A stretch of DNA of 61,869 nucleotides, the filler included, from Dugesia japonica (Eukaryota): the NCBI GenBank assembly GCA_001938525.1. It is 6 parts of 6 records of this genome, joined end to end, with 100 filler letters (N's around TTAATTAATTAA, not from the genome) between each part and the next. Parts side by side here need not be neighbours in the genome. Positions count along the whole stretch, not along the records: positions 1 to 11,880 come from MQRL01489706.1; 5 more parts are not named here. One strand, given 5' to 3'. The position numbers were made by a program, and so were the translations under genes. Each line of letters begins with the position of its first letter. Within the stretch, counting starts at the first letter, position 1. Below are positions 1-11,880 of the stretch, piece after piece. Under the pieces are notes generated by a model. It ran no database searches and was not told the origin of the DNA. It was given only the letters and a program-made list of their open reading frames with translations.

Positions 1-503
1 AGATATCAATAGATATTAGGAATTTAGTCATTAAAAAACAATTATGAAATACAAGTATTTAAATATTAATATTTAGATATTTTTATTCCCTTTGGGTGAG
101 ATTATTAATTAATAATTATTTCCTCATAATATATATATTGCATTTCATTAATATTTCTTGTAATTTTAATAATTAATTCATCAAATACGGGGAAAATGAA
201 GAAAATGGAAGAGCAAATTTAATAAAAGAGGTTTGAATTTTATTAATAAATTTAATTTAGGAATGCTTACAGATATATGTGAAGAACAGAAATTTTTGAA
301 CGAAGAAAGAAAACCGATGCTCCCGGACTATATTGTTAACCAGTATATAGATGCTGAATTTTGCGAATCTGATTGTATCAGGTGCGCAAAGTTTAATCTA
401 ATGGTCTCTATGGAAATGCATCTTTTTAATAAAATTAACAAGATTTATTGCGTAAATATTTATTTCAATAAAACAACTCCAAGTTAACAATAAGTAAACA
501 AAT

Positions 504-955
504 TTAGATTTTCTTTGCAATATTTTTGACTTTTCATATAACTCCTACCGAATTAATTGATTTCTTATAGCCTTTAATCTCCCCTTGAATCATCGATTGG
601 TTGTTGTCTTTATATTGTTTTTCGTCTCTTTCCTTAAAACCTATATGAATAGTGTCATATACTCCAATTTGCCTGCTTAATATTGCAAACAGAGCTTCCA
701 CTATGTTTCCATCCTTCTCATGAATTCCAAATAGAAAGAGATTAAATTTAGATATTTTTATTGAAACTGGTTTCTAAAATAAAATATTAATTTATAAAAT
801 GTAATAAAAATAATTACATTTTACATATAAATAATTAAATAATAAATAATCAGAATCTTTAAAAAGAACAACTTGTAATTGAGGAAATCGGTAATTTTCC
901 ATAGTTCCACAGTTATTGTTGACAAGTTTTCCTTAGTGAGTGGTTTTACTTGCAT
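504..955 (-). pseudogene. Two-exon small gene of unknown family, paralogue of 60530-60966, with in-frame stops
   Basis: ATG at 955 reads MQVKPLTKENLSTITVELWK...; 44-bp GT-AG intron at 817-774; exon 2 reads KPVSIKISKFNLFLFGIHEKDGNIVEALF...SMIQGEIKGYKKSINSVGVI*KVK; TATA-like TATATAA about 45 nt upstream; aligns by eye with the 60530 copy. Confidence 0.6.
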
Positions 956-1214
956 TTTTGAGTTGTAAAAGTGATTAATGTTATGTAAACATTTGGTTAT
1001 ATACTAGCTGCAATACACACATACTTGTTATTTGTGAGTTCCTATTGGTAATTATTTGCTATCATTGATATAATTTGTTACTATTTCTTTTAACTGTTGC
1101 GATTAGTTAATATAAAATTAATATGATTTGATAATATTTGTTTTTTAATTGGTTACCGGGCTTATATAAACATGACTTGGTTTTCATAATAAATTTACAT
1201 TCTACAGAAGGAAA

Positions 1215-1716
1215 ATGAATTTCTTTAAAAATTTCGTTGAAAATCCTTATCAAAATGTATAAGTTATTAAACATATTGTTAAACAGGAAATATTAGTAAA
1301 TATAATTACCATTATTGATAACTAATCCNTGAATATTAATGAAGAAATAGAAGAAACAATCATTCAAGATGAACAAAAACCAGATGATNAAAATATAGAT
1401 GACGNATGTATAAAAAATACCAATATTTTTATGGTAAGAGTTTTATTTATTTATCCAACCTTATTAAATTTCTTTTCTAGAATTAGCGAAGCAGATATTA
1501 AATGAAAGGTTTCCAGAATTTCTTAATGACTGTATACTGGTGACTATGGAGTAATATTTTGATTATTTATTGCGAACAACAGCAATTGACATTGATCTTA
1601 TTATGAACGATTACATATTGTAACTTCAATTGGATTTGCTATGCAATTTAAACAAGACACTTTACGACATAATGAAGGAACATATTCTAAAGATGGCTAA
1701 AGAATTTGAAAACTAA
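1215..1716 (+). pseudogene. Decayed spliced gene of unknown function
   Basis: TATATAAA at 1163; ATG 1215 (MNFFKNFVENPYQN...NEEIEETIIQDEQKPDD); 47-bp intron gtaagag...ttttctag at 1434-1480; second exon ELAKQILNERFPEFLND...MKEHILKMAKEFEN*; several TAA stops and a frame slip. Confidence 0.4.
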
Positions 1717-1859
1717 TGTACTAATGTGCTAACAATAAATGTTTTATTGGATAGTTGTTTTGTCTTATTTACTTTTTAGTAGTAAATTAATGAATGTAAC
1801 AGGTATGAAATAGGAATGCAACATATATTCACTGAGAATCATTTGCCGGGGAATTCTTA

Positions 1860-2950
1860 TGATAATTACAATATGCATGCAATTTATATGACTATCTCTA
1901 TTACATGGCTACTATATAATTAATACCAGGTAACTATGCAAATAAACAATACATTATATGATTACTATGTAAATAATACACTATTAAACCATATAACACA
2001 TGGTTACTATGTAAAAACTACAAGGTAACTATACAAATAATATACTCGTAAACCTTATTTTACATGGTTAATATGTAAATAATATACTAATAAACCCTAT
2101 AACACAGAGTTACTATGAAAATAATATACTCACAAACCTTATACATTCATAAAAATACTTACTTATAAGGTATATTTACAGTAATTTTAAGTTATTTATA
2201 TGAAAATGTTCCACACTCATAATCCTTATTATACATAATTGCTATGTAAATTATGCATGGTAACTATGAAAATAATATACTCATAAACCCTTTATTACAC
2301 GTTTGGTATGCAAATAATACACTCATCAACCCTATAAACTCAATAACTACATACAAGCATAAAAATATTTTCTTATAAGTTTTTATATAGACTTATAAGT
2401 TATATATTGTAAGGTTCCATGAATTTATGATTTTTTTGAAAGAATTTCTATGTTTTTATCATTTTGTAAAGAAATGTTCTCAACTAATATGTTTTTTATA
2501 GAAAAATTGAATGACTTATACATTATTTATAAGAAAATCGCAACACCAATATGTTTTTTATAGAAAATGTCCTAGCTAATTTGTTTTGTAAGAAAGAAGT
2601 TCTGTTTTTATCATCTTATAAAGAAAGGTTTTATTTTTAAATATATATTTACATTTAAATATTACAAAGACACCCCTTTTTGAAACAATATACAGTAACT
2701 ATGTAAATAATACAAATAATACAGCTTTACTATGAAAATAATACATAAAATGTTTTTTTAAAAATTAATATTTTTAAAAATTTCATAATTCCAATTAAGA
2801 TAATATGAAATTAAGCTGAAAATAATATCGCTTAACTATGTAAATAATGCAGTGTAAGTATGTAAATCATACATAATACAAAAAAAAACTTTTAAATTAA
2901 TATTATTTAAAATTCATAATTACAATTAAGATAATATGAAATTAAGCAAT
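1860..2950. repeat. Degenerate tandem repeat (gtaactatgtaaataataca-like units) with a ~130-bp direct duplication (2694-2817 / 2832-2947)
   Basis: Recurrent ACTATGTAAATAATA motif; duplicated cataatt.caattaagataatatgaaattaagc. Confidence 0.75.
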
Positions 2951-3268
2951 CAATAAATATAAAAAATGTTGAGTTTATTTGCTCTATTTTCAATTTTTTT
3001 AATGCATATTTTTACTTCATATTTTCAAAGACCTCACTTCAATAATCTTAAAAGACTGTCATATAGTGAGAAAAGAAGATAGTTAGTCTGAGTGATAGTG
3101 ATTAAGAGTTGATATAACATTTTTTTAATTTAAAATACTATAACTATTTGAGTACATTTTAATCATCTGATGATCCTTTTTCTTCTTTACTTGAAACTTG
3201 GTAACCGTGCTTGCTCTTTGGTTTAATTGGATTCTTCTTCCTTTTGATAACCAACATTAAGATACATT

Positions 3269-3620
3269 AGTAGGTAGATTGTTGCGCACTGTATCACCCC
3301 TCTCAAAGTCAACTTTTTTCAAGGTCACTGATACACTATACATGATTGGGATTGGTCTGTGATCTAGTACACTCAATTCTGATTGTTGGAAAATTTGAAG
3401 GTCGATTTTTCAAGGTCAAATTGGCACAGTATCCTGCGATCTGATTGTTCAAAGTAGTTCAAGGTCAAAGTGATATAGTATACCGCGTTTTGATTGGTCG
3501 AAACATTTCAAGGTCAAAGTGAGTTAGTATCTAGTGATCTGATTGTTAGAATATTTCAAGGTCAAATGAAAGTAGGTCAAGCTCATTTTCATGACAACTA
3601 TTTGTAGGTCAATGTCAACT
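3269..3620 (+). mobile_element. AGTAG-terminus element end (Polinton/Maverick-like TIR?) with TCAAGGTCA/TGATTGG tandem array
   Basis: Starts AGTAGGTAGATTGTTGCGCACTGTATCACCCC, shared with 11279, 32730 (rc), 37795 and 60106; followed by ~50-60 bp units containing TTCAAGGTCA and TGATTG(G/T). Confidence 0.7.
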
Positions 3621-3749
3621 ATCATTCAGACATGTTTAATAATTACTCTAACCTTTAATCCTCGTTCAGACTTAATATTATTAATTTCCGCATTAACATT
3701 ATATACTTAACCCAACATCAGAATCAAAAAATAAAGATTATATCAGTTT

Positions 3750-5960
3750 ATGTCGTGATTTTCTTACAAAGACTAATGAAATTAAAGACATTAAGAATTG
3801 CCCAATTGCGATTGCATGCTTTGACATAAAAGATGCTTTTGGTAGTGTTCCACACTGTTAATTTTGGCATTGCTATAATATATTAAGGTTGAAAATGACT
3901 TTGCTAACATCCTAGAACTTCTATACTCTGATATATCTTCATTCTATACTTGTAGTTCAATAATCATAACAAATATTCTAATCAGGAGAGGAGTCAAACA
4001 AGGCTGCCCATTTATATATGATCTTATTTAATTTGGCTATCAATTCATCACTCCAATCAATTTCTGCATCCCGCACAATACCTTTTATGATAGGGTCATC
4101 AAAAATTCAGACTCTTTCATATGCTGATAATTTGGCACTCGTTGCAACTAATACTGAAGACCTTTATAAAATAATAAATATGGCAATATGAACTGCAAAA
4201 ATCATTGGATTTGAATTTTGACCTGCTAAATGGGCTTATCTTAAACTACCTCAAACCAACTTCACCAGCAAAATCTCTATAAATGATAAGAAAATAAAAA
4301 ATTAACTATAAAATAATTTTATCAATATTTTGGCATTCCGGTCGGAGACAGAAATGACCAAAGTCTTTATGAGACGATACAACAAGTCATTGATGATTTA
4401 ACAAAAAGTTCTGATTCAGACTTACTAGGAGGGCAGAAGCTAAAGAAATACAAAAGTATTCCTACATTCTAGACTCACATTTGGATTCAAAATGCGCGAA
4501 ATCTAGCGCGAAAATTAGTGCCAATAGCCTTCCACAGAATAATCCAAATGTTAGTAACAACAATATTAGTAAGGTTTGTTTCCAAGTTAGGCGCATATTA
4601 AATCTTTCGAAACGATCTGAAATTCTTTACTTCTACAATTCAACCGAAATTAGAGGAGCTGCTTGCGTCGATCTGTTGGATGAATATCAAACTCAATGTG
4701 TTGTGCAATATTTTAAATTACTTACCTCAAGATGCATGTACACAAACAAAATCAATATAGACTCCTTAAGTCTCGCAGCAAATTCAAGAATAAATTAACT
4801 AAACCCATCTCTAAATAAATGTTTCGAATGGATAAATGGGAAAAAACATTAAAAACCTCAAATGCCAAGAAAACGCACTTTACGCGAAAATGAACTGCAA
4901 TATAATTTTTCAAAAAGACTCATGATACAGATATATCGTTAAATGTACTTAATAAAAAAATAGTCCTTTATATGACCAACAAGACAAGAGGAACGTATGT
5001 TATTAATCATACATCTCGTAAAGAAATTTCAAATATCATTTACAACTTAGTCTTTGATTCATACCCTGAAAATGGGAAAAAAGCAAAGGAAGCAACTTGA
5101 TATTCACAGCTATTCAAATGAGCCCTATTATTAATTAAATGATTTTCAAAATTGACCTCAATGAATTTTAGTGGAATTTTATTCACAGTGCACTAACAAA
5201 CTCTCTATCAATACGTGGAAGATCCTTTTATGAAAAAAAACTGTCGGCGCTGTTTTACTGAAAATGAATCTTTATCACATGTTCTTCAAAAATGCAAAAT
5301 GAATCAAGCAATAGCAATTGAAAGACATAATGCTTGCCTTGATATTATTATCAGTAAACTTATAACCTCAGATGCTATTGTTGAGGTCAATAGAATAAAT
5401 AAATATATTTCGGATTCTAGCGAAAGAGTGGATGCTACAGTAACTAATGTTGAAAAAAAACAATATATCTAATTGATGTCAAATGCCCAATAGACTCCGA
5501 AAAGAATTTTGAAGAGTGTGACAAAAGAAATTTAGATAAATATGATCTACTAAACAATAAAGTNAAAATAGCGAAGCCTGACTTTAAAGTAGAATTACAT
5601 ACTTGCATAATTGGATCACTTGGCTCAATTCTAACCGCAACTATCTGAATTCTAGAAAAAATTATCGAAAACTAAAATTTAATAAAAAGAATATTAAAAG
5701 ATTGCTCCAAACCAAATATAACCTACTCAGCAGAAATATGGAAGTTCCACAAAACTGGCATTAGAAACAACAAAATAACTTCCAATATTGAAGAAAAGTA
5801 TATAAAGAATTGAAGAAACGTGTGTGAGTTCCATGTAGAAGCAAAAACAAGACTGTTTGTATATTCAAACTTGTTATATTTAATAAATTTTATTATTACT
5901 ACAAACTCAAACACTGAGGAGATTATTTCTTCGACTTACAAGTGAGCTTTTATAAAAAAA
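3750..5960 (+). mobile_element. 5'-truncated, decayed non-LTR retrotransposon with RT and C-terminal restriction-like endonuclease (R2/NeSL/R4-type)
   Basis: Translated motifs ACFDIKDAFGSVPH, RRGVKQGCP, LSYADNLAL (YADD), YQYFGIP; CCHC knuckle CRRC...HVLQKC; ERHN, SERVD, LIDVKCP, KYDLL, IIGSLGS; A-rich tail near 5955; many stops and frameshifts. Confidence 0.9.
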
Positions 5961-6614: not shown

Positions 6615-6716
6615 AGTAGTGGGTTAGGGTAAACAATGGGCCACCTGTGAATGGGTTAGGGTAAACAATGGGCCACCTGTGAATGGGTTAGGGTAAAAAA
6701 TGGGCCACCTGTGAAT
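6615..6716 (+). repeat. AGTAGT followed by 3 x 32-bp tandem repeat GGGTTAGGGTAAACAATGGGCCACCTGTGAAT
   Basis: Three nearly perfect copies at 6621-6716. Confidence 0.9.
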
Positions 6717-6739
6717 GAAATTTATTAAAATTTATTAAA

Positions 6740-7260
6740 ATTGATCAAATTTGAGCAAATCTTTCTTTATTTTAATTTATTTAATCGGCATGCTCAATTT
6801 TAGCTAATTTTGCTAAGAAAATTGCACAATGGGGTTCAATTTGGTCAACTTTAGTAAAACACTTCCCCGGTAATGACAATTATAGTATATTTTTGGTCGG
6901 TTATGTTCAATTATGGACTATTTTTGAGCAATTTGGGCAATCTTTAGGGCAATAAACACTTTAGAAAAGTCGATTTTTGGTAAATGGTAGTCAAAGTTGT
7001 TTTTCTTAAGGATGAATTTGTTCAGATTTATCATCTGGATGTTCAATGTTTGTCGGTTTTGTTCGAATTTGGTCAATAATTTGCTCGAATTTGCTCACAA
7101 TAGTCGACTTTGGTCTTTTTTGGACAAATTTGGTCAAAATTTCGCTCGAAAAGGTCAAATTTGGTCAAGTTTGGTTGAATTTAGTCGACTCTGCTCAAAT
7201 ATTTGATCACAATAGTCAATTTTGGTTGAATTTAGGTTATTTTGTTTACATTTTCAAGTT
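6740..7260 (+). repeat. Degenerate TTGGTCAAATT-rich repeat, with an inverted homologue at 9620-9830 and a similar tract at 39780-40030
   Basis: tcgactctgctcaaatatttgatcacaatagtcaattt (~7185-7222) matches the reverse complement of ~9641-9678. Confidence 0.65.
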
Positions 7261-7479
7261 TTTAAATTCACGAAAATTTGGTGGAAAAAGTCATTTTGTT
7301 TAATTATTTAAATTAAATGAAAAGTTAATTAAGGTTTTCAAGGGAATTCGAGTGAAAAACCAAAAATTGCAAAACATTTTTAAACATTTCTATCTAGATT
7401 TTTACACTTATCAATTCAGAATGACCTCAATATAATTTCTAACCAGAAATACTTTTCGAATAATTTGAATAAATAATAA

Positions 7480-7920
7480 TAATAAAGAATAAAGCCACAT
7501 ACAAGAGGTCCACAAACGTTCCCGTTGGAATGAGCTCTCTTAGGTATTCTTGAGTAGAATTGGTTGATGATCGACATTTAATTCTCTGAAAGCGTTGCTA
7601 ATAGACTCAGTTATGAATAATTGGGTAAAGGATCTAAGATGATAGCTCTTTTTTTGTTACACGTGTAGAGAACCTAATGGCACTTGTTAATATTCTTATG
7701 TGAAAATGTTTCTGATGTTGTCAAGATTGATTTTTGGGTTTGCTTTCATCAAAGGAGTGCCCTCTTTGATTGTCATAATAGCGAAGCTACAGTTAGGAAT
7801 AGCTAAACAGTCTGGAATCCTAAGATGTTCTTCTATAAACCGATCAATTTGGCTGTCACTAAACCAAAACTTCTCCAAGTTTGGTGGTTTTTCTACAATC
7901 AGATGGTGTGGTGACGGCGT
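7480..7920 (-). pseudogene. Ulp1/C48-like cysteine protease relic, probably from a mobile element
   Basis: Across three frameshifts: WFSDSQIDRFIE ... NINKCH*VL (HW) ... ILDPL ... SNGNVCGPLVCGF, i.e. the His-Asp-Cys order of clan CE proteases. Confidence 0.65.
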
Positions 7921-8741
7921 TCTGATTGTAGAACCTGATTGTCAATTCATAGGATTAGCAGTGTGTGTCTCATAATTGTCATTAATAGTTGGAGAGTGTT
8001 TTCTTTTGTTTCCTCTAGATTTTATGATCCTCGAAGCGATAATGATTTATCAATATTTTTGAACAAATTTGATCATAAACCAGTCTATATGATAGAGACT
8101 TTTAAGCTGAGAATGACTGTAATAGCTAAAAATCGCCAATTTTTTGTTTGGTGCTGACGGAAATTTGATAAACCTGTGAGTTTTTTGTATAATTTTTGAA
8201 AATTTTCTCGACTTGTATTAAAACATAGATCATTAGATAGAGAATGTTTTCCTAATCGAGAATCTCATCACTTAAAATCATCAAACTTAATTTTGACGGG
8301 AAAACATCGAAAGAACTTTGTCAAACATGAATATAAAACTGAAAATAAACTGACATGAATATAAAAATTATTTTTATATAATTTCATCCAAATTTAATGA
8401 TTCAAGTACTATTCGATTCAGAATGTTTCACTGAACAATAATAAAGGTGGTAAAAGTTGAGAAAATAAATTATTTTGAAAAAGATTCACGTATTTTTAAT
8501 TCTCAAAAATTAATGAAAATTTTAAATTTGATAATTATAAAAATATAAATTATTTCAAATGTAAACAATAGACCTTCTATTCAATATCGAATATTTTGCT
8601 GATCAAGAATAATATCACCTAAAATTTCCAAGCTTATATATGATGAAAACCATCAAATAACACGTACTTAATATTGGTTGGTTGTAACTTATCATTTAAA
8701 ATATAAAAATATTTCAAATTTGAACATCAAAGTATGTATTG

Positions 8742-8805
8742 AGTAGTTCTCAAACTGTGGTACATGTACCACTGGTGGTACATTATAATATTTTACAGTG
8801 GTACA
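8742..8805 (+). mobile_element. hAT (Charlie/Buster-like) terminal fragment
   Basis: agtagttctcaaactgtggtacatgtaccactggtggtaca resembles CAGTGGTTCTCAAACT...GTAC...GTACCAC ends of Charlie/Buster elements; no partner end seen. Confidence 0.5.
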
Positions 8806-9254
8806 ATTTTTACAGAAAAAAATTAAATGAATGTCCAAAATGTATACTTATTTATATTTGATTGTAATGTAAAAGTTTCATTATGAATATAATTAAATAA
8901 TATAAATTTAAAGTGTTTTATTCTTTGATTATATACATTCCATTCAAGATTCATTAATTTTTAATGGCGGTAAATATATTTTTGTTTCATATTTATCTAT
9001 TACAAAATTTGAAAATTTTAAGAACTCCTAATCTATTTAATAGAAATTTTACGTTGAGTAAGAAAAATGTGGTTAAAAATCGTCAAACTTTTACCTTAAT
9101 AAAATAAATTGAAAAGCAAGTCATCATATGGAAATTGAAATTCATAACATTAAAATGGTAATTATTTAATTAATTATCTTTAATTTACTTATATAATTCC
9201 TAAAAATTCCCACTGTTTTATTAATTTTAAAACATTTTAATAATAATTTTATTT

Positions 9255-9540
9255 AATGTGTTGGCTATGAATTTCAAAGCGATTGAATAAAATTTCTGTG
9301 ATGAATTTTAATTAATTAATTCACAATGGTGTAATTTTTGATTAAGACAGTTCAATTTTATAAAATGTTTCAATTTGTAATTAAAGTATTGATTAATTTT
9401 AATTAGTGTGTTGTAATATTTAATGTGCTGGCTATGAATTTTAATGTGATTGAATAAAATTTTTATTATGAAATTTATAATTTTTATTCACGTTGGTGTA
9501 ATTTTGATAAATATGGTATAATTTTATTAAATATTTTCAT
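9255..9540. repeat. ~166-bp direct tandem duplication
   Basis: taatgtg(t/c)tggctatgaattt...gattgaataaaattt...tggtgtaatttt at 9255 and 9421. Confidence 0.75.
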
Positions 9541-10674
9541 TTTACATTAAACTGTAGAAAATTTTGATTATGAATTTAAAATTTTTAATGAATTTTTATT
9601 CTAGGCCAAGATTGTACCGTACTGATGAAAGGACTTGGTAAAATTGACCATTGTGCGCAAATATTTAAGCAGAGTCGATAAAATTTGTCCCAAAATCGAC
9701 AAAAACTTAACCAAATTCGAATAAATTCTTCACTGAATTCCACAAAAACCCACCAAAACTGACCATCCCGACAAAAATTTTTAACAAATTCGTACTTAAG
9801 CAAAAGATTGCTCGAATTGTTCTCCATTTATGAAACCGTCCGGCTGCCACTTATTCTGGTTGATGCAGTATTTCCTTTCTGGTAAATGATTTCAACACCA
9901 CGACAATGTTTTGAAAGGACTCATCGATCTTGTAAATTCTAAGGAAAGATTGTCTTACAAAATATGGTCTCCGGTCTGCAACAAGTAGTAGAACGGGACG
10001 GAGGCTTCACTTATAATCATACTTAGGTTTTTTATTTTTGATTTATTAAACCAATAAAACAAAAGCAGACATTACTTTTCGAACAACCTAAAGAAATAAT
10101 TTTAGATAAATTAATTAAAGTAAAATTCAATTTTTTGGAAAAATCAGTATTATTTAAACTATTAAAAATTTTACAATTTTGCGCTTTCTCAAATTTAAAA
10201 TTATCCAAATCTAAAAATAATTTCGTTTAAAATAAATTATAATAATAACCTTTAAAATTTAAAAGTAATCTTTACACTTGATAAAACCATATTAAAATTT
10301 TCCAAACCCTAACTTATCTTACATAAGAAAGTGTTGAATAGATTAGATCTCTCAAGTGATATTGTATGTAAACCATTTTTTATAAAAAAACATCAACACT
10401 TCCAAATGGATTGATCTGAGAGCAGTTTAAATTACATTAGAACGTCAAATGCCAGCCAATTATATATTTACAATAATTTATCTGACTTATTGTCATTTTC
10501 TGTTTTACAGTCACAAATTAAAAGTATAACCTTTAAAGGTTAGCAAACGAGTTTGTCAATGAAATCAATTGATGTTTATTTTTCTAATTTATTGCCTTTA
10601 TAGTAATTTCACTCAATCTCTTTAATTATTAAATTTATTGTTACAACTACTAATCCAAATCTGTTTATTAAATA

Positions 10675-11278
10675 TTAGGGGTGCAGAAAAGTAATGAGAA
10701 AATTTTATATTAAAATAAAAACTATTTTATTTATTAACAAAAAAACAATAAATCATTGATATAATTGTCATCATTGTTAATAACTCTTTGCCATCTATTC
10801 ATCAACTAATGAATCTCATTCAAAAAGAATTTGACTTCTTTTTCAACAAAATACTTACAGAGGTCCAATTTCATGTTTTCTAAACTTTTAAAAGTTTTAC
10901 CTCTTAAAGAAATGTTCGAGAAAACGTAAAAGGTAATAATCTGATGGGGTAATATCGCTAATATATAATGAATGTTGCAAAGATTCTTACCATAAATCTC
11001 TGATTTTGAAGTAAGTCATCTTTGAAATGTGCTGTGTTCCGTTATAATGGACAAAAAACGCCTTTTCTTTGCCAAAACAGATTTTAAAGTATCTAATAGT
11101 CTACAATAGAATTCACTGTTAATTGTTTGTCCCGATTCCTATAGCTGCCAATGCACTGGTTCTTTAAAATCCCATCAAACAGACAGTAATGCTTTTTTTG
11201 ATGAAAATTTGGATTTCGAGGCGGAAATGATTATTCACTAATATAACCATTGGTTTCCTTTATGTGAATTGTCATACA
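10675..11278 (-). mobile_element. Decayed mariner, 3' half, interrupted at 11279
   Basis: TA + TIR ttaggggtgcagaaaagtaatg at 10675; minus strand reads LYDNSHKGNQW, KKALLSV*WD, DITPSDYYLLR. Confidence 0.85.
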
Positions 11279-11710
11279 AGTAGATAGATAGTAGAGCACT
11301 GGATCAACCAATCGTCAAGGTCAAATTTTTTAAAGGTCAGTGATCTAGTATACTTGATTCTGATTGGTTTAAATAATTCAAGGTTGAATTTTTAAGGTCA
11401 GTGATCTAGTATACTGAATTTTGATTGGTGGAAAATCTCAAGGTCGAATGTTCAAAGTCAGTGATCAAGTATACTCGATTATGATTGGTTGAAATAATTC
11501 AAGGTGGAATTTTCAAGGTCAGTGATTTAGTATACTGGATTTTGATTGGTTGAAAATCTAAAGGTCAAATTCTCAAGGTCGAATGTTCAAGTTCAGGGAT
11601 CTAGTATACTCGATTCTGATTGGCTGAAAACTCAAGGTCAAAGTGATTTAATATACTCGATTTAGATTGGTTGAAATAATTCAAGGTGAATTTTCAAGGT
11701 CAGATTCATT
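11279..11710 (+). mobile_element. AGTAG-terminus element end with ~60-bp TCAAGGTCA/TGATTGG array, inserted in a mariner
   Basis: AGTAGATAGATAGTAGAGCACTGGATCAACC begins exactly where the mariner coding sequence stops; about 14 AAGGT(C)-type motifs and 6 GATTGG motifs. Confidence 0.75.
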
Positions 11711-11880
11711 GAATGTCAATATTTTTTTTGTGTAACTTATAAATTTTTATTTCTATTGAGTTACTCAATATAATTTACTCAGAAATTAGTTACTCATTTA
11801 GAAATTTTCTTTGTTTTATTTGCATTTTCTTTGCTTTACTTGCATTTCTATTGCATTTTCTTTATTTTAATTTAACCAAT

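Follow-up and report, generated by a model that had tools for sequence, protein, structure and literature searches.

A high-copy minisatellite-bearing repeat family with nuclear-receptor-like and Y-box-like strings in Dugesia japonica looks like ordinary transposon-type DNA

The array and its surroundings

The window analysed here is a stretch of 61,869 nucleotides of Dugesia japonica DNA, filler included. A preliminary description had placed at 11279–11710 an array of ~60-bp units holding nuclear-receptor half-sites and CCAAT boxes. Tandem Repeats Finder and registration of the units confirm such an array, with a period of 61 and with (T)CAAGGTC(A) strings and a TGATTGG in each unit. Of that span, the array is real but the first 35 nt (11279–11314) are a non-repeated head, homologous from its first base to that of a second, sister copy in the window. 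We refer to the sister as copy A and to the present feature as copy B, and give the parts of both without strand.

By eye and by unit register, array B occupies 11315–11703 and consists of ~6.5 tandem units of 47–74 nt, in every one of which a single TGATTGG accompanies one to three (T)CAAGGTC(A) strings. Tandem Repeats Finder reports 11315–11580 at period 61 (4.4 copies, 81% matches, score 339); it further detects a double unit of 121 nt, with a score of 411, and at 11553–11595 a 14-nt period nested within the larger one. Four modules make up the unit: a variable linker, TTGAAAWWWT; one to three 14-nt repeats of the TCAAGGTCGAATTT type; GTGATCTAGTATACT, which holds an imperfect 16-nt palindrome; and CGATTCTGATTGG. 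The head opens with an (RTAG)n-like terminal run, GTAG ATAG ATAG TAG, and goes on with GAGCACTGGATCAACC..., at a position where the family majority, taken from contig loose ends and from the majority letters at 11310/11311, is GCGCACTGTAYCACCCC. The idea that the head is an inverted unit was rejected: TCAACCAATC of copy B matches the inverse of GATTGGTTGA exactly, yet AA is replaced by CC in the family majority, and because of these two bases we take the inverse match to be specific to this copy.

Copy B closes with a short tail of uncertain assignment at 11704–11717, where summed contig depth falls; local alignments of this tail with the right module of copy A and with the mariner-like flank were no better than shuffles. 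The sequence to its right, 11718–11803, is AT-rich and has a summed contig depth of 69,000–109,000, with a ratio between two DNA runs that differs from that of array B. It represents either another abundant repeat or DNA of low complexity. A 15-nt period (AGTTACTCAAAATA) runs within it, and a 20-nt period follows at 11804–11847.

To the left, on the minus strand at 10677–11279, lies the translated C-terminal half of a decayed transposase with many stops and an ITR-like end at 10677, which we take to be mariner-like, partly from motifs known in that group. Its frame (...YDNSHKGNQW..., minus strand) reaches 11279, and the remnant is cut just after the ...YDN... region. Pfam PF01359 (Transposase_1) matches 11019–11138 weakly (E 0.0014, below the curated cutoff), and a PDB search with pieces of the mariner gave no useful match. 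The family of this remnant has tens to a few hundred times the depth of unique sequence. The clean junction reported earlier is borne out, its position moving from 11278/11279 to 11279/11280 (±1), and summed contig depth rises ten-fold at 11279. An insertion into a mariner had also been proposed. Copy B does abut a truncated mariner-like remnant, but no target-site duplication was detected, and in the 163 nt that remain to its right within this piece the sequence is not mariner and the mariner does not resume.

Further repeats occur in the window. Long inverted arms at 6890–7260 and 9590–9810 (46 nt at 87%, with flanking similarity) carry a periodic 10–11-nt motif of the TTTGGTCAAA type, which contains GGTCAA. 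The ORF fragments in the ~2.3 kb between them gave no match in Pfam, and the whole, 6890–9810, resembles a DNA transposon whose long terminal inverted repeats are themselves repetitive. Three copies (98%) of a 32-nt unit, TGGGTTAGGGTAAACAATGGGCCACCTGTGAA, at 6620–6717 are unusually GC-rich and young for an AT-rich region. A minisatellite at 1922–2340 and 2683–2873 consists of 2.6 copies, at 80%, of a 42-nt unit and of scattered 32–57-nt relatives with the core ACTATGTAAATAATA, and a very AT-rich direct repeat of 89 nt (82% identity) occupies 9250–9338 and 9417–9505, 167 nt apart.

A sister copy, a common terminus and an abundant family

A related array had been noticed at 3300–3620, and it too is real: Tandem Repeats Finder and registration place array A at 3301–3566. 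The program reports 3408–3566 (period 49, 3.3 copies), and the array extends from 3301 in units of 31–62 nt, mostly 49, usually with one TCAAGGTCA each. GATTGT stands in place of GATTGG in three of the six units, so that these have no CCAAT. The head of copy A lies at 3269–3300 (GTAG GTAG ATTGTT GCGCACTGTATCACCCC), and a right module beginning GAAAGTAGGTCAAGCTCATTTTCATGAC... follows the array at 3567–3650, its right limit being uncertain (at most ~3696). Both arrays are the seat of the recurrent strings. CAAGGTCA occurs nine times in the window against 0.17 expected, all nine within arrays A and B, as do seven of the eight occurrences of TGATTGG (1.67 expected). Copy A has five YCAAGGYCA and four ATTGG; copy B has four YCAAGGYCA, seven TNAAGGTCA and six ATTGG.

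With nhmmer the two copies align from their first base (3269 and 11279–80, E 5e-28), in agreement with pairwise alignment, and share ~290 nt of homology including the ~35-nt head, two copies thus lying within 12 kb. The aligned heads read GTAG GTAG ATTGTT GCGCACTGTATCACC in copy A and GTAG ATAG ATAG TAG AGCACTGGATCAAC in copy B, the terminal run differing in repeat number (GTAG GTAG against GTAG ATAG ATAG TAG). On the minus strand the copies end in ...CAATCTACCTAC and ...CTACTATCTATCTAC, that is, in (CTAY)n-like runs of 2–4 repeats and no poly(A). The left flanks are unrelated, that of copy B being the mariner-like remnant. The right sides differ as well: copy B stops within ~15 nt of its last unit, and copy A continues into GAAAGTAGGTCAAGCTCATTTTCATGAC... 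The left terminus is therefore common to the two copies and the right side is not (n = 2).

Directly after the right module of copy A, at 3697–5790 (+), begins a 5'-truncated, decayed non-LTR retrotransposon of the restriction-like-endonuclease group, with a CCHC finger and an RHN motif after the reverse transcriptase. Its portion at 3805–5759 maps to residues 875–1528 of a 1537-residue protein with Peptidase_C48 and RVT_1 domains, as in NeSL-type elements. A HMMER search with this LINE returned relatives at no more than 51% identity on unrelated Logan/ENA contigs, and the repeat was present in none of them. Word searches with the LINE, the mariner and a further ORF gave no candidate locus, and exact matching of 10 ORFs gave no entry in the collection. 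We rejected the possibility that the array is the 5' UTR or the target of this LINE, since the LINE is 5'-truncated and nothing array-like follows its 3' end.

To estimate the abundance of the family, Logan contigs from two DNA runs of this organism, each belonging to a separate study, were aligned to 10600–11880 at 85% identity or more. Summed word depth was about 10–18 for unique contigs, about 500–4,000 over the mariner remnant, about 45,000 over the head (X1) and 15,000–312,000 over array B, so that the pile-up on the array in the contigs of the two runs is 1,000 to 30,000 times the depth of unique sequence. More than 100 distinct contigs cover many positions of array B, and many contig joints skip whole numbers of units. 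A pile-up of this size marks the family as dispersed and high in copy number, with a minisatellite body of variable length and a single sharp terminus. As an order of magnitude only, summed depth not being copy number, the figures suggest heads in the thousands and units in the tens of thousands. The array had been described as transposon-borne; this holds in that a dispersed, transposon-like family lies next to a truncated mariner-like remnant, while a simple insertion into a mariner gains no support.

Contig loose ends recover the head of the family (...GCGCACTGTACCACCCC...), and some copies contain short units that have no AAGGTCA module, for example ...TGATTGGT-CAAT-GGATCTAGTATAC. Comparison of the loose ends at 11389 and 11645 with copy A brought out the sequence that follows arrays elsewhere (GAAAGTAGATCCAGGTTATTTCC... 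and GCTCATTATAATT...), which resembles the right module of copy A; the first ~30 nt of that module resemble the post-array sequence of other genomic and transcribed copies. Taken together, the loose ends and joints indicate a dispersed family of three parts, namely a fixed head, a minisatellite of variable length and a further conserved module. A family-majority 20-mer of the unit had no match in viral, metagenome and prokaryote genome collections, and no paper containing the unit strings was found in the literature.

Such depth could also be that of a dispersed satellite or minisatellite fragment spread by recombination or extrachromosomal circles, the head then being the edge of a larger duplicated segment. 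The very high summed depth and a variable unit structure with a 121-nt higher-order period would be in keeping with that origin, but the two copies start at the same base beside unrelated flanks, and the non-repeated head and the right module recur in other copies. The arrays are also short: copies A and B in the window have 5–7 units bounded by a head, and the long homogeneous head-to-tail arrays of a classical satellite were not encountered there, although such arrays may exist elsewhere in the genome. We consider a satellite fragment very unlikely.

Conservation of the motif strings and transcription

The extended half-site of NR5A and ERR receptors is YCAAGGYCA or TNAAGGTCA, and the Y-box, of CCAAT type, is CTGATTGGYY. 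Judged by string matching, the repeated strings do correspond to the extended nuclear-receptor half-site, as had been proposed, and the family-majority unit to a full Y-box, CTGATTGGTT. Each unit might be read as a functional transcription factor-binding monomer, with NR5A/ERR at TCAAGGTCA and NF-Y at CTGATTGGTT, in which case the array would be either the element's own plus-strand 5' promoter or enhancer, or a co-opted host enhancer or sink. The family-majority unit combines a perfect Y-box with TCAAGGTCA, and TCAAGGT(C) is the most recurrent word common to the two diverged arrays (14 occurrences), both of which favour such a role. Hundreds of motifs are known, however, and some match is to be expected in any 61-nt unit.

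Conservation was measured against the family-majority unit, assembled from the units of the window and the contig majority letters; it rests on 12 units, which are few and not independent. In copy B, mismatch amounts to 7.6% in the two TCAAGGTC[A/G] nuclear-receptor motifs, 10.4% in the Y-box CTGATTGG and 15.7% in the linkers, and is lowest (5.5%) in the palindromic block GTGATCTAGTATACT, which is not a motif. The motifs are no better kept than all other columns together (p = 0.39); against the linkers alone they give p = 0.08, and the palindromic block against the linkers gives p = 0.03. Departures of copy B from a clear family majority are not depleted in the motifs either, 3 of the 10 positions shown falling in AAGGTC against about 4 expected. 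The unit thus has several conserved blocks, of which the best kept is not one of the proposed factor sites.

The earlier suggestion that the motifs are better conserved than the spacers is not upheld by these values, nor by the missing CCAAT in half of the copy A units. In copy B the motifs appear to mutate much as the spacers do, with the reservation that the units compared are few and non-independent. In array A, the proximal TCAAGGTCA is the best-kept block (2.6% mismatch), which would suit binding monomers, but the spacing between the two motifs varies (20–23 nt), and the short family units have no nuclear-receptor motif. Because the motif strings of copy B decay like the rest of the unit, we infer that no host enhancer is being maintained at this locus. 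With nuclear-receptor-like and Y-box-like strings that are no better preserved than their surroundings in the unit, the stretch looks like ordinary transposon-type repeat DNA and not like a host enhancer.

Low-level transcription of the family is a point in favour of promoter monomers. Of the 13.6 million reads in a paired oligo-dT library, 589 match, and since 84% of the matching reads run on into unlike sequence, they derive from other copies. First mates fall on the plus strand 3–6 times more often over the array and about equally over the mariner, which suggests RNA from the minus strand by the convention of most stranded kits, although the convention of this library may differ. The RNA also carries letters that are rare in DNA: T>C at 11677 is found in 60 of 66 RNA reads and in 7 of 4,320 of the DNA depth, and G>C at 11596 in 42 of 46 and in 203 of 64,271, respectively. 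Variants at 11558 and 11585 are likewise rare in DNA, and 11679 is another position at which the RNA reads of the family have DNA-rare letters. Variants that are near single-copy in DNA indicate that the RNA comes from a single locus, or from a few, at other places in the genome, and for most of the family no expression was detected.

This silence of most copies speaks against monomers that function as binding sites, as does the absence of any pile-up of RNA read starts over the array, and we regard a functional role of the units in factor binding as quite unlikely. Mouse L1 has arrays of promoter monomers in its 5' UTR, and Alu has DR2 nuclear-receptor sites. The Dugesia family resembles these in offering tandem units or dispersed copies with factor motifs, which could spread regulatory sites. 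It differs from L1 monomers in that neither a start-site pile-up over the array nor motif-specific constraint was found, and its abundance suits a short non-autonomous element better than the 5' ends of full-length LINEs.

Element class and relation to known repeats

Our leading interpretation, a tentative one, is that copy B is a dead member of a non-autonomous mobile element family of very high copy number, in which the motifs are inherited and decaying, and that it most likely corresponds to a minus-strand retroposon in its 3' region. Such an element would possess a short conserved head at its one true terminus and a minisatellite of variable length, with a conserved module past the array in the more complete copies. 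Slippage or unequal exchange would add and remove units of the minisatellite, which are nested and measure 14, about 36, 49 and 61 nt. With modest confidence, we would assign the element to the 3' region of a non-LTR retroposon, either a SINE or a LINE 3' UTR, read on the minus strand. The left end (...CAGTGCGC..(CTAY)n-3' on that strand) would then be an invariant 3' terminus that bears a short tetranucleotide tail of variable length, and 5' truncation of copies would account for the differing right ends. The nuclear-receptor-like and Y-box-like strings would be ancestral features of the unit, inherited by every copy.

We infer this mechanism of mobility, and with it the polarity of the element, from the asymmetric ends, the tetranucleotide-like run that varies in number and the strand bias of the RNA. 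In stringent-type non-LTR retroposons, comprising CR1/L2-type LINEs and their SINEs, the 3' end is a short microsatellite tail and not poly(A), and these tails differ in repeat number between insertions. Judged by copies A and B, the Dugesia family would share with CR1/L2-type 3' ends a fixed terminus in a short variable repeat, a variable opposite end, one-strand-biased RNA and the lack of terminal inverted repeats. In contrast to CR1/L2-type elements, no partner LINE, conserved 3' stem-loop or target-site duplication was found, and a 61-nt minisatellite that fills the visible element is unusual. Minus-strand hairpins next to the tail were not better than shuffles (z-scores −0.6 to −1.0), no LINE with the same tail was identified, and the neighbouring NeSL-type LINE is unrelated and on the opposite strand. 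Flank-to-flank alignments were no better than shuffles, a weak test for a target-site duplication given the uncertain right ends, and the similarity of the two right tails was not above that of shuffles. ARAGORN found no tRNA gene, an A/B-box tRNA-like head as in tRNA-derived SINEs was not observed, and Rfam gave no match at E up to 1. Runs of T4 occur inside the units on both strands.

A DNA or rolling-circle origin has to be weighed against the retroposon. The array could form the central tandem repeats of a non-autonomous element mobilised in trans by a transposase, whether Helentron-derived (HINE/DINE-1-like), foldback-like or MITE-like. HINEs have a left flank with a mostly 4-nt microsatellite, a satDNA-like array and a right flank of ~60 nt, with no target-site duplication and a very high copy number (PMC7492417). 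Copy A resembles this layout of microsatellite, array and right flank, its tetranucleotide-like run preceding the array and a conserved module, known also from other copies, following it, with no target-site duplication detected; in addition, the 16-nt imperfect palindrome of each unit could bind a dimeric protein. Copy B, however, has no right module. Subterminal inverted repeats and a 3' palindrome are absent from both copies: inverted pairs number 0 in copy A, those in copy B are unit-internal palindromes and a copy-specific 10-mer, and none joins head and right side in either copy. The microsatellite-like run stands at the very terminus, with nothing upstream in copy B, and the flanking bases are A| and not T|T. 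We therefore regard a transposase-mobilised element of this kind as unlikely. A classical DNA transposon with terminal inverted repeats, or a MITE, gained no support, as neither such repeats nor a target-site duplication were found in copies A and B.

The closest parallel among Helentrons is Cg_HINE of Crassostrea gigas, which belongs to the HINE/DINE-1 non-autonomous Helentrons (PMC7492417). Like the Dugesia family, it is abundant and dispersed, with a variable satDNA-like array between conserved flanks and a short eroded 4-nt microsatellite before the array. The two differ in the terminal features listed above, namely the subterminal inverted repeats, the 3' palindrome, the T|T target and the position of the microsatellite-like run. 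In the Tetris foldback of Drosophila virilis (PMC4079207; reviewed in PMC9659126), tandem repeats internal to the transposon are reported to seed satellites. Tetris-type elements share with the present family tandem repeats of variable number inside a mobile element, and differ by long inverted terminal arrays, which this family does not have and which the element at about 6890–9810 in the same window does.

It is well documented that mobile elements can harbour tandem repeats, spread them and at times give rise to satellites (PMC7492417, PMC4079207, PMC9659126), and the Dugesia family is, as far as checked, a new case. For annotation, what had been put forward as a homotypic enhancer belongs to a repeat family that ranks among the most abundant in the genome. 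Motif scans will return thousands of similar arrays, which should be treated as one family and not as independent regulatory finds.

NR5A/NR6A-type receptors act in gonads. Monomers of young copies, in which TCAAGGTCA, a perfect Y-box CTGATTGGTT and the conserved 16-nt palindrome occur together, might conceivably serve the element as a promoter or enhancer driven by these factors, that tissue being one possible setting, and thousands of such arrays could rewire or titrate factors, an outcome that strikes us as highly improbable. If young copies do bind NR5A/ERR and NF-Y, the family would be a case of transposon-spread regulatory modules. Independently of this, it clearly illustrates how a mobile element can bear a minisatellite at its end, and satellite DNA might arise from it.
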